From Macrostomum lignano (Eukaryota): a stretch of 64,000 nt of DNA. Position 1 is the first letter of the stretch; each line of letters begins with the position of its first letter. The position numbers and the translations under genes were made by a program. The notes beneath the pieces are model-generated. The model ran no database searches, was not told the origin of the DNA, and saw only the letters and a list, made by a program, of their open reading frames with translations. Below are positions 54,140 through 57,100 of the stretch, piece by piece. The stretch spans positions 620,001 to 684,000 of the forward strand of contig NIVC01000040.1 of NCBI GenBank assembly GCA_002269645.1. The letters are read 5' to 3'.

Positions 54140-57100
54140 TCAAGCAACATCTGCAGCCGCAGCCGCAGCCGAATCAACATGGCAGAACATCCGGTAAGCA
54201 CTGTTTGCGTCAGTTTCAAGCACATCACCGGCCCCTCTAGCCAGCAGGTCGGCCAGGATGTCCTTGAACTGTGGTCGCAATGGCGCGGCCTGCCAGCAGG
54301 CGTGCATGAGGCTGGCCAATCGACTCGGACAGTCGGACGGTGGCCGGAGATGCCGTCGGCCAGATTTCACCACGTCGGCCACCTGAGAGTTGCTTAACAA
54401 TCCGTACGGCTGAAGAGCTCCGGTGGCGATCTCCCAGAGTGTGACGCCGTAGGACCAGACGTCTGACGCCACGCTGTACCGTCCGGTGCGCAGCGTCTCA
54501 GGCGCCATCCAGCGCACCGGGACGCCGCAGGACGCCACCAGTTGGCGACGGACGCGGATGGCCGAACGGCGCAATCGGGCCAGCCCGAGATCTGCAGAGG
54601 TGCAGGTTTATGAGGATTTTCATGGCAGCACGAGAATCGACCAAGGACTACTAAAGTCGAAAAACGCAACAGCCGAAATCAATGGAAAATGTTTTGAAGG
54701 CCACTTTTCGCCGACAAAATACACTACGGAGATAGGAAGTTTTCTCTTTTTCAGCACAACACTTGTTTTAATTGCTTTCTGTAAAAGGCAGACCAAATTT
54801 TCATCTTTTGATATGATAAAATAGATAAAATAAAATAAAACATATCAAAAGATGAACATTCCGAGCACACACAAGCGCACCAACACGCAGGCCCGCACTC
54901 ACACACACGCTCATACAGAGTGTACAGCAGCCACCTGACTTTCTAATCGTCAGGCACGTACACTCCCTGTGCCCTGGGAGCTGGCCCTCGCGGCTGTGAA
55001 TCGCACAACAACCATCGTCCAATTTTCGCGCACACACCAAGCCCCTCGCAAGCTTGCATACAACCAGCTCAAACTCAGCAGTTAAAATGCCACCAAACCA
55101 ACCTGCCACCACGACGTTGAGTCGTTCGTCGAGCAGGCAGTTTCTAGCCGCCAGGTCGCAGTGCAGCAGGCCGCGCTGGTGCAGGAACGCCATGCCGTCC
55201 GCGATCTGCGCTGCCCACAGCATCGCCTGAGCGTTGCAGACTCCGCTGCCGCCGCCTTCTCTAGCGAGCGCTCTCAGGTAGCGTCGCAGATCGCCGCGCG
55301 CCGCCAGTTGAAGCACCAGGTAGCGCGGCCGGCTTGTCGACACGACGCCAACCAGGCGAATCACGTGACGGCAACCGTGGTCGCCGAGCCGCTTCAAACA
55401 CTGCGCCTCGGCCAGTAGGCGCCGGCTTTGCCCGCCACCGCTGCCGCTGCCACCTCTAACGGCCGCGTCTTCAAATGTCGTCTTGACAGCCACCCCGCGG
55501 CTCTCCGACGCTGCGGCTTGGGCGACCTCGCCGAGGTAAACCCGGCCGTAGGATCCGGCGCCCAGCGGCGGCTGCTCCCAGAAGACGCGCAGCTGGCGCC
55601 GAGATAGTTCGTGCCGACCAAACCTTCGTAGACGCTGCCATCGTCTGAGACGAAGCACGCTGACTGCGGCAAGCAGGACGACCGCGGCGACGCCCGCCAG
55701 GATGGCAAAAATCAGCTTCGACCGGCCGCGTCGATGCAACTCGACGAATGGCATCGTCAGATTGACTGGCGGCGTCCAGGGGCCCGGGCCTGACTGGCTG
55801 ACCGCGCGCACCTGCACTAGGTATCGCCGCCCTGGGCCAAGGCGCGTCACCGCCAGGCCGCCTTCCACTCGCCGCTGCCGCTGCTCGGTGCTGTTCCTCC
55901 GCCAGTCGGCGTAGTCAATGCGAAGCAGCCGCGACTGCGGGTTGGTGCTGCCCTCCGCGGCTGAGACCAGCACCTGCGGAATTGGTTGGCGGGCAAGCAA
56001 TGGCAAGCATTGCCAGTCAGTCAGACAGACAGACAGACAGACAGACAGACAGACAGACAGACAGACAGACAGACAGACAGACAGACAGACAGACAGACAG
56101 ACAGACAGACAGACAGACAGACAGACAGACAGACAGACAGACAGACAGACAGACAGACAGACAGACAGACAGACAGACAGACAGACAGACAGACAGACAG
56201 ACAGACAGACAGACAGACAGACAGACAGACAGACAGACAGGCAGACAGACAGACAGACAGACAGACAGACAGACAGACAGACAGACAGGCAGACAGACAG
56301 GCAGACAGACAGACAGACAGACAGACAGACAGACAGACAGACAGACAGACAGACAGACAGACAGACAGACAGACAGACAGACAGACAGACAGACAGACAG
56401 ACAGACAGACAGACAGACAGACAGACAGACAGACAGACAGACAGGCAGATAGACAGACAGACAGACAGACAGACAGACAGACAGACAGACAGACAGACAG
56501 ACAGACAGACAGACAGACAGACAGACAGACAGACAGACAGACAGACAGACAGACAGACACACAGACACACAGACAGACCTCAAAGTGCAGCAGCCGACCG
56601 TTCGGCTCCTCAGGCTTCGCCCAGGTGACGACGCCGCTTCGTCCATCGGCGCTGGGAACGACGTGCAGCGCCCCAGCAGGCAGGGCGTCGGCCAGCGGAT
56701 CGGGCGGAGTTCGGTAGCAGATGCTTGCAGAAGCGGAGCAGAACCGCACGGGCCGACTGCGCAAGGGGTGCTTATAGGGGGCGTGGCAGGCCACCAGCTG
56801 CGCGAGAGAAGGGAATAAAACGGTAAAAAGATCGATGGAGTATCCTTTGCATAGCAACCAGTATCACCACCATAGCAACGAGTTTTATCTGCCTAGCAAC
56901 GCGTTTTATCCCCATAGCAACCTATATCATACCCACAGCAACCTGTATCATCCGCATAGCAACCTGTTCATCCCCATAGCAACCAGTTTCATCCGCATAG
57001 CAACCAGCATCATCCATATAGCAACCTGTATCATACACACAGCAACATGTATCATCCGCATAGCAACCCCCTGTATCATCCGCATAGCAACCCCCTGTAT

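Follow-up and report, generated by a model that had tools for sequence, protein, structure and literature searches.

Insulin-type receptors (InR) are activated by trans-autophosphorylation of a YxxxYY motif in the activation loop, with the RD arginine acting as a clamp, and IRS proteins then dock on an NPxY motif. What could an InR chain still do if all of these elements had been lost from it? The question is raised by a partial InR-like gene on the minus strand of a 64,000-nucleotide stretch of the genome of Macrostomum lignano, a regenerating flatworm that is amenable to RNAi and transgenesis. This stretch, here called the window, comprises positions 620,001 to 684,000 of contig NIVC01000040.1 (assembly GCA_002269645.1), and coordinates are counted from its first nucleotide. 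An earlier reading made from the letters alone (the sequence-only reading) had taken the gene for a divergent InR-like receptor tyrosine kinase (RTK). As judged from the translated exons, the joint loss of the RD arginine, of all loop tyrosines, of NPxY and of the docking tail is real and internally coherent.

Kinase domain, juxtamembrane region and tail

The catalytic loop had been read as HCDLAARN, with Cys in place of the HRD arginine, and translation of the minus strand (55163-55140) gave the same result. The reading of DLG for DFG, with an intron splitting the motif, was likewise confirmed at the GT-AG junction, and the change from Phe to Leu is a single transition (TTC to CTC). It was also found that the activation loop indeed lacks Tyr; it is Arg-rich and has two Ser, one of them in an RLRRS context. 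The retention of the catalytic Lys (in VAVK) and Asp, also proposed earlier, was evident in the translation. Other residues kept are the GxGxxG motif of the G-loop, present as GAGSYGRV (55562-55539, minus strand), the alphaC Glu, the catalytic-loop Asn, the DLG Asp and the hydrophobic residues of the regulatory spine, together with the tyrosine-kinase-specific substrate motifs AAR and PVRWMAPE and the Arg of the second half of the RD pocket (GLAR). Since the catalytic Asp is preceded by Cys and not by Arg, the kinase belongs to the non-RD class; with the beta3 Lys, the catalytic Asp and the DLG Asp all there, it falls outside the sequence definition of a pseudokinase. In an alignment of 84 related kinase domains, no bulky or evidently occluding substitution was seen to line the ATP pocket; DFG is present in 79 of them and DLG in one other, while the catalytic loop has HR in 82 and HCD in two others. 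A Gly-rich insert precedes alphaC.

The domain was matched by Pfam PK_Tyr_Ser-Thr with E=2.6e-64, and the best full-length matches among solved structures were the human INSR and IGF1R kinases (E~1e-52, PDB phmmer). An AlphaFold2 model built from a 32-sequence alignment had a mean predicted local distance difference test score (pLDDT) of 86.3 and a predicted template modelling score (pTM) of 0.87, with low confidence confined to the Gly-rich insert, the activation loop (57-71) and the tail. When the predicted kinase was searched with Foldseek, the top matches were the activated insulin receptor kinase (IRK) structures 4XLV and 1RQQ and the IGF1R kinase. An alternative exon with a canonical activation loop was ruled out, as a single C-lobe locus was detected in the window by tblastn and intron 5 holds no further loop-encoding exon. 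A frameshift as the source of the odd loop was rejected as well, the other two frames giving no InR-like or Tyr-containing peptide.

The short juxtamembrane region without NPxY was described correctly from the letters: 13 Arg-rich residues separate the transmembrane (TM) helix (55715-55653, minus strand; 21 residues) from the HELS motif, which aligns with human EVSRE, and no NPxY was found anywhere in the 1002-residue model. Of the eight Tyr on the intracellular side, seven occupy structural core positions and one lies in the C-terminal tail of 43 residues (NSAYRMF); the juxtamembrane region has none. With neither NPxY nor a juxtamembrane Tyr, and with a single Tyr in the tail, the chain would therefore be unable to recruit IRS or Shc.

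Gene model, ectodomain and relatives

The exons were located with InR proteins as tblastn probes and the splice junctions were then read, which gave a model of 1002 open codons interrupted by five introns, all of them GT-AG (Table 1). The model is partial, because the window stops at position 64000, before L1, the Cys-rich region and the first part of L2 are reached; what it includes is the greater part of L2, FN3-1, FN3-2 (split, with the insert domain and RIRR), FN3-3, the TM helix and the kinase. The boundary of exon 1 coincides with the start of the partial model of the canonical M. lignano InR (UniRef A0A1I8IAZ6), and the exon aligns to L2 of other InRs. The donor of exon 2 is ambiguous (59333 or 59315); this exon, matched by tblastn to InR residues ~386-741 (E to 2.7e-14), carries the SACG motif and a CIGDC insert in FN3-1, a degenerate alphaCT segment and the RIRR furin-type site. 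The end of exon 3 (DYFSAYELQ) aligns with HFTxYxIEL of other InRs. Exon K1 runs from the acceptor ccgcag/GTG to the donor G/gttggt and closes with VVVA and the G of the Asp codon, and exon K2 runs from the acceptor ctctgcag/AT (AT CTC GGG) to the stop TGA at 54142-54140; the two kinase exons together encode 440 residues. The GC content by codon position is 0.68/0.51/0.75 and the exons have 53-69% GC, as against 40-51% in the introns, which are flat across positions. The third-position GC bias of neighbouring genes in the window is similar. Rfam and tRNA scans of the window gave nothing that bears on the gene.

The ectodomain had been called clearly InR-like. This holds for its architecture of L2, three FN3 domains and RIRR and does not extend to the whole of it, since alignment showed a degenerate alphaCT and no equivalent of human C860. 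The ectodomain exons match InR ectodomains over residues ~386-985 by tblastn. The window includes no more than the last two thirds of L2, for which the Pfam Recep_L_domain score was 21.3 bits (E=3e-4) against a cut-off of 21.8; this part aligns well with InR L2. The RIRR site (59415-59404, minus strand), a predicted cleavage site, lies in FN3-2, which also holds the insert domain. In the human insulin receptor (IR), C524 forms the alpha-alpha disulfide and C647 and C860 the alpha-beta disulfide. Equivalents of C524 (SACG) and C647 (TADC) are present, and one Cys is left of the CCxC triplet; FN3-3 has no Cys, and the C860 equivalent, the partner of C647, is therefore missing. The segment aligned with alphaCT, DAAENLARI, stands directly against RIRR, at a place where the canonical M. 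lignano InR has FEDTLLRIMF, and it does not follow the helix pattern F-E-D/N-x-L-H/Q-N-x-V/I-F/Y. It is spaced 14 residues from the Cys triplet, as against ~33 residues in the human receptor. The CIGDC insert in FN3-1 (59923-59937, minus strand) has its counterpart at residues 231-235 of the canonical M. lignano InR and may be a lineage-specific, Cys-rich extra disulfide knot beside the Cys of the alpha-alpha disulfide.

The canonical M. lignano InR (P0151 in our set) has NPDY and HRD. A second kinase fragment of canonical type (P0148), with the YYxxYY loop (D)FGMTRDVYYSDYYKK, pairs with it at 100% bootstrap. The proposal of a divergent InR paralog was borne out, as this canonical InR is the nearest relative of the gene's ectodomain: the two share 34.6% identity and 178 bits over 340 residues, versus at most 29% and 100 bits with every other InR compared. 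The canonical ectodomain itself reaches at most 29% and 112 bits with other InRs. Moreover, the CIGDC insert is confined to the two M. lignano genes among 336 proteins. On the strength of this nearest match and the common insert, the gene is, by sequence comparison, a divergent and probably lineage-specific paralog of the canonical receptor. In a neighbour-joining (NJ) tree of ectodomains, a flatworm clade was recovered at 96%, with the two M. lignano genes as sisters (85%) and two trematode sequences as sisters (77%); this and the kinase tree discussed below are NJ trees with crude distances and bootstrap only. The sequence-only reading had proposed to place the gene relative to InR, ROS and venus kinase receptors. 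It falls with InR, and a ROS or venus kinase identity is ruled out by an ectodomain of L2 plus FN3 rather than a Venus-flytrap module.

The public protein collections yielded no close relative. A word-indexed protein search with the kinase gave a best match of 36% identity over 81% of the query, and a Calicophoron protein reached 50% in the C-lobe alone; the same search with the ectodomain exon gave no match at all. In an exhaustive HMMER search of 1.8 billion representatives, the best single-domain matches had 44-48% identity and were all canonical InRs. Two public models contain mis-joins (…VKIG/GKSPAEGQAPL and …LLHFGMTRD), which suggests that the canonical paralog has an intron at the same DFG Asp codon.

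On comparing rates of change, it was found that the ectodomain is 26.1% identical to non-flatworm InRs, versus 26.5% for the canonical copy. In the kinase, the corresponding values are 39.7% and 50.3%, with trematodes at 43-46%. By these identities, the ectodomain is still under ordinary InR-type constraint and the acceleration is specific to the kinase domain. Even there, 54 of the 63 near-invariant positions (86%; at least 90% conserved across 54 InR-like sequences) are kept. The nine that changed are GSFG to GSYG, M to L, hinge E to Q, hinge M to A, HRD R to C, VKIG K to V, DFG F to L and YY to RV, and five of them sit in the stretch from the catalytic loop to the activation loop.

Known receptor kinases, mode of action and alternatives

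The gene resembles canonical InR and IGF1R (human INSR, A0A1I8IAZ6) in its order of L2, FN3, FN3 with insert and basic cleavage site, FN3, TM and IRK-type kinase, in its C524-equivalent Cys and in its best sequence and fold matches, which are INSR and IGF1R kinases. It differs from them in HCD and DLG, in the absence of YxxxYY, NPxY, juxtamembrane Tyr and C-tail docking, and in its degenerate alphaCT, missing C860 equivalent and Gly-rich insert before alphaC. Receptors of the IR-1 type from schistosomes and other trematodes (SmIR-1, SjIR-1 and those of Calicophoron, Fasciola and Echinostoma) are flatworm InR paralogs that share with it GLAR, WAAQIADGM and a short juxtamembrane region without NPXY, and the first activation-loop Tyr is lost in them too; HRD, DFG and the YY pair, however, are retained, and these receptors are regarded as active kinases. 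In schistosome IR-1, NPXY is absent and the first activation-loop Tyr has been lost (PMC2844434).

In ROR1 and ROR2, HKD and DLG go together with a full set of K, E, D, N and D, yet both are pseudokinases with occluded ATP sites (PMC13259870 Table 2). The ROR2 kinase was among the nearest non-InR matches of the M. lignano kinase (E~1e-40, PDB phmmer). The ROR group, taken together with PTK7 and RYK, is similar to it as animal RTKs with a non-Arg HxD and DLG and a retained K/E/D/N/D set. ROR differs in its HKD, which is still basic, its altered G-loop, its conserved loop tyrosines and its Wnt-binding Ig/CRD/Kringle ectodomain; in the M. lignano gene, by contrast, the G-loop is intact and the ectodomain is of InR type. 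Daphnia InR-4, insect InR2 and decoy receptors are examples of lineage-specific InR duplicates in which canonical kinase features are gone or which serve to modulate InR1. Insect decoys, unlike the present gene with all its catalytic residues, lack the whole kinase. Daphnia pulex InR-4 was reported to be without a catalytic site, yet expressed and under purifying selection (PMC2978223).

An analogy with innate-immune non-RD receptors had been drawn earlier, and nothing was found to support it. The plant non-RD kinases FLS2, EFR and XA21 are also single-pass receptor kinases with an HCD catalytic loop, but they belong to the unrelated Ser/Thr receptor-like kinase (RLK)/Pelle family and have leucine-rich repeat ectodomains; the nearest animal RTKs with a non-Arg HxD and DLG are ROR1 and ROR2. 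EFR is reported to undergo activation-loop phosphorylation even so (PMC8463890).

Sporadic cases of HCD are seen among further animal sequences of InR-like or other tyrosine kinases (P0019, P0026, P0028, P0009 and P0070), which indicates that non-RD IR-like tyrosine kinases arose more than once. P0019 is the one case among these that combines HCD with a Tyr-free loop. All five are environmental animal-type InR-like fragments, P0026, P0028 and P0009 coming from ENA and Tara-type marine sources; apart from P0019 they have a normal YxxYY loop. In literature searches, no InR-family member was found that unites a non-RD loop, DLG, zero loop tyrosines and an intact catalytic set, and no account of any non-RD InR or of M. 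lignano InRs was found either.

How might such a chain work? In IRK, the RD arginine helps to bind the phosphate of the phosphorylated loop. Substitutions of the corresponding arginine in human INSR, R1131Q and R1131W, cause insulin-resistance syndromes (PMC5121292). These disease alleles imply that loss of the arginine would be tolerable only in a receptor that makes no use of loop phosphorylation, an idea that fits the simultaneous loss of all three tyrosines. Two options would be left: catalysis that is independent of phosphorylation and directed at partners or substrates, and a role without catalysis. The latter, non-catalytic or modulatory, appears about as likely as the former, because the nearest animal RTKs with a non-Arg HxD and DLG are the ROR pseudokinases.

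The account put forward here, tentatively and as one that is nearly as apt to be right as wrong, is that of a live chain, probably weakly or constitutively active, that works through partners; activity, phosphorylation independence, partner-mediated output and expression are what we infer for the gene. On this account, the kinase would have been remodelled such that InR-style regulation and read-out are no longer possible, as the loop has no tyrosine, the RD arginine that would clamp it once phosphorylated is gone, and IRS and Shc find no docking site. It would remain a nucleotide-binding kinase that needs no activation-loop phosphorylation; nucleotide binding seems most likely since the ATP-binding, Mg-binding and phosphotransfer residues, AAR and PVRWMAPE and the predicted IRK fold are kept. 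Output would pass through partners, by phosphorylating or allosterically modulating another receptor chain or by acting on direct substrates. The canonical InR in a hybrid dimer is one example of such a partner, and insulin-like signalling would then be tuned rather than relayed. The paralog would thus probably modulate insulin-type signalling instead of transmitting it in the usual way. In a narrower and rather improbable version, an InR-family chain would have turned into a non-RD receptor without autophosphorylation sites that signals or gates purely via its dimer partner and that serves as a constitutively primed or allosteric half-receptor when paired with the canonical InR.

Several observations weigh against the account of a live, partner-dependent kinase and are best taken together with the alternatives. 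Canonical ligand contact of the insulin type and covalent alpha-beta linkage are doubtful, because alphaCT is degenerate and the C860 equivalent has been lost. A further point is that the non-Arg HxD plus DLG combination is known among animal RTKs only from ROR1 and ROR2, inactive despite K, E, D, N and D (PMC13259870), which favours a live receptor tyrosine pseudokinase: an expressed, catalytically inert decoy, dominant-negative or allosteric partner, possible if on the unlikely side, that might work by sequestering insulin-like peptides or by pairing with the canonical chain. It would resemble ROR1, ROR2, PTK7 and RYK, the kinase-less insect decoys, or plant non-RD EFR acting on BAK1; EFR is reported to activate BAK1, its co-receptor, allosterically (PMC11259431). 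Restriction of the acceleration to the kinase domain, concentration of the changes between catalytic loop and activation loop, and disappearance of all autophosphorylation and docking sites would all suit an inert kinase, as would the precedent of Daphnia InR-4 mentioned above. On the other hand, GxGxxG, the VAVK Lys, the alphaC Glu, the catalytic Asp and Asn and the DLG Asp are all present, no bulky substitution reaches the ATP pocket, and HCD or DLG alone removes no catalytic group. DLG and non-RD loops are found in active kinases too, TGF-beta type I receptors having DLG.

The M. lignano genome is partly duplicated, and the gene could also be a silent or recently dead duplicate in which HCD and DLG are early neutral changes at the onset of decay, an explanation regarded as quite unlikely. 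Neither the gene nor a near-identical copy was found in 5.8 billion clustered proteins or in 1.8 billion representatives, collections in which other M. lignano proteins do occur, and neither of the two public protein sets of the species includes it. The changes to HCD and DLG, each a single transition from the canonical codon (CGC to TGC and TTC to CTC), could be of recent origin. The adjacent GPCR has two in-frame TAG stops, so the region tolerates broken genes, and the alphaCT helix and the C860 equivalent are gone. Against decay stand 1002 codons without a stop or frameshift, five intact GT-AG introns, a strong third-position GC periodicity and a GC contrast between exons and introns. Furthermore, 86% of the near-invariant kinase positions are kept despite an overall identity of ~40%, and the ectodomain has diverged no faster than that of the canonical copy, so that the bulk of the divergence would have happened under selection. 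Absence from the public protein sets is weak evidence because annotation of the assembly is patchy: UROS/HEM4 was called on the homeologous contig NIVC01000806.1 and not here.

A last alternative touches the origin only and fits any function. In the kinase NJ tree the gene joins five trematode IR kinases (72% bootstrap), and it might accordingly be the Macrostomum ortholog of neodermatan IR-1-type receptors rather than a Macrostomum-specific duplicate, with NPxY loss and erosion of the loop tyrosines beginning in an early flatworm ancestor. GLAR, NCLxD and the short NPxY-less juxtamembrane region, common to the Calicophoron, Fasciola and Echinostoma IRs, and the state of schistosome IR-1, without NPXY and the first loop Tyr, point the same way. 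This orthology is nonetheless considered doubtful: the ectodomain tree pairs the gene with the canonical M. lignano InR and the trematodes with each other, and CIGDC is common only to the M. lignano paralog. The trematode grouping is probably due to long-branch attraction, because it joins the longest and fastest branches of the family and was obtained with distance methods only.

Coordinates, neighbouring elements and implications

Table 1. Positions in the window of the InR-like gene, its parts and the repeat arrays (a slash marks a splice junction)
Feature	Position	Strand	Evidence or remark
Partial InR-like gene, six exons	63388-63232, 60457-59333, 58237-58051, 56797-56579, 55973-55103, 54591-54140	-	
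Exon 1, middle of L2 (receptor L) domain	63232..63388	-	acceptor ttgcag/AC, donor AG/gtaaat
Exon 2, L2 end, FN3-1, FN3-2 first half, insert domain	59333..60457	-	tblastn and splice sites
Exon 3, beta-chain part of insert domain and FN3-2 second half	58051..58237	-	acceptor ctgcag/C, donor CAG/gtgaaa
Exon 4, FN3-2 end (LVACH…FCS) and FN3-3 start	56579..56797	-	acceptor cgcgcag/CTG, donor GAG/gtctgt; tblastn E=4.8e-6
Intron 4, nearly all (GACA)n microsatellite	55974..56578	-	GT…AG ends
Exon K1, rest of FN3-3, TM, juxtamembrane, kinase N-lobe and catalytic loop	55103..55973	-	Pfam kinase match
TGC codon, Cys replacing the HRD arginine	55158..55160	-	one C-to-T transition from CGC
Intron 5, 511 nt, phase 1, GT…AG	54592..55102	-	splits Asp codon (G/AT) of DLG
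Exon K2, DLG, activation loop (to 54497), C-lobe, 43-residue tail, stop	54140..54591	-	translation
Micro- and minisatellite arrays	56020-56570; 37712-39510; 46296-46952; 18242-19833; 24837-26100; 60530-61200; 53600-54040		

Next to the InR-like gene, 1.4 kb from its 3' end and convergent with it, lies an open reading frame (ORF) for a rhodopsin-family G-protein-coupled receptor (GPCR; 51553-52737, plus strand; Pfam 7tm_1 E=1e-26). It is open except for its two in-frame stops, a TAG TAG tandem at 51922-51927 between TM3 (…CKMNYMIHYM) and the DRF motif; possible explanations are a pseudogene, a polymorphism of the strain and read-through of the stops. Look-ups of this ORF, of P0151 and of P0148 matched no annotated record. 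A tRNA-like element at 52871-52940 (plus strand; Rfam tRNA 35.2 bits, no ARAGORN call) is probably a tRNA-derived short interspersed element, and a peptide signature (…ICVLEQD…) like that of this element recurs near 28190.

The satellite arrays are exceptionally long and yield long spurious ORFs in every frame; the (GGAT/GGATGGAT)n array reaches up to ~1.7 kb, and a 24-nt unit fills an intron of the alpha-L-fucosidase gene. This gene, at 17.7-21.6 kb, is 100% identical to BOX15_Mlig034267g2. Three paralogous WSC-domain exons on the plus strand (36936-37283, 45649-46080 and 47471-47875; Pfam WSC E=6e-16, 3e-17 and 4e-12) each open with …SVKL(L/K/E)GC…, and two of the three adjoin (GGAT)n arrays. 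The exons may represent either a cluster of tandem WSC genes or one multi-WSC gene. In a Harbinger/PIF-type element (41302-43104), the frame of the DDE_Tnp_4 transposase (E=6e-36) is broken near 42470-42520, and a Myb/SANT-like ORF (41302-41667) runs on the strand opposite to the transposase. The GC-rich block (57%) at 33000-35000, with long overlapping ORFs on both strands, looks from its translations like an endonuclease/reverse transcriptase remnant of the long interspersed element type; Pfam gave no match on its longest frame. The window further contains a TLC-domain (ceramide-synthase-like) gene (4908-6415, plus strand; Pfam E=9e-28), an alpha/beta-hydrolase gene that is part of the assembly's annotation (8711-15724, plus strand) and a small ORF (23650-24150, plus strand) whose CxC…CxH pattern is ZSWIM7-like by eye and which has no Pfam match.

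Contig NIVC01000806.1 (22498-47094) is collinear with window positions 7136-27326 at 84-95% nucleotide identity and is, on this evidence, a homeolog or divergent haplotype, which probably ends just short of the InR-like gene. It carries an intact-looking long terminal repeat retrotransposon ORF of 1019 aa (RVT/RNaseH/integrase), with none in the window counterpart. UROS (HEM4) is annotated on that contig only, and its exons are present in the window at ~24.8-28 kb.

The InR-like gene is missing from the current M. lignano annotation, and if it is simply unexpressed it would be an ordinary decaying duplicate. Otherwise it would represent a natural InR-family member that has dropped the loop tyrosines, the RD arginine and NPxY together while the catalytic machinery and a constrained ectodomain have been kept. 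Should signalling through partners alone prove true, plant non-RD receptors such as EFR would have in this chain a counterpart among animal tyrosine kinases. The gene could show how pseudokinase-like states of RTKs such as ROR arise from active ancestors, and it could reveal other roles of InR chains, as modulator, hybrid partner or phosphorylation-independent kinase.

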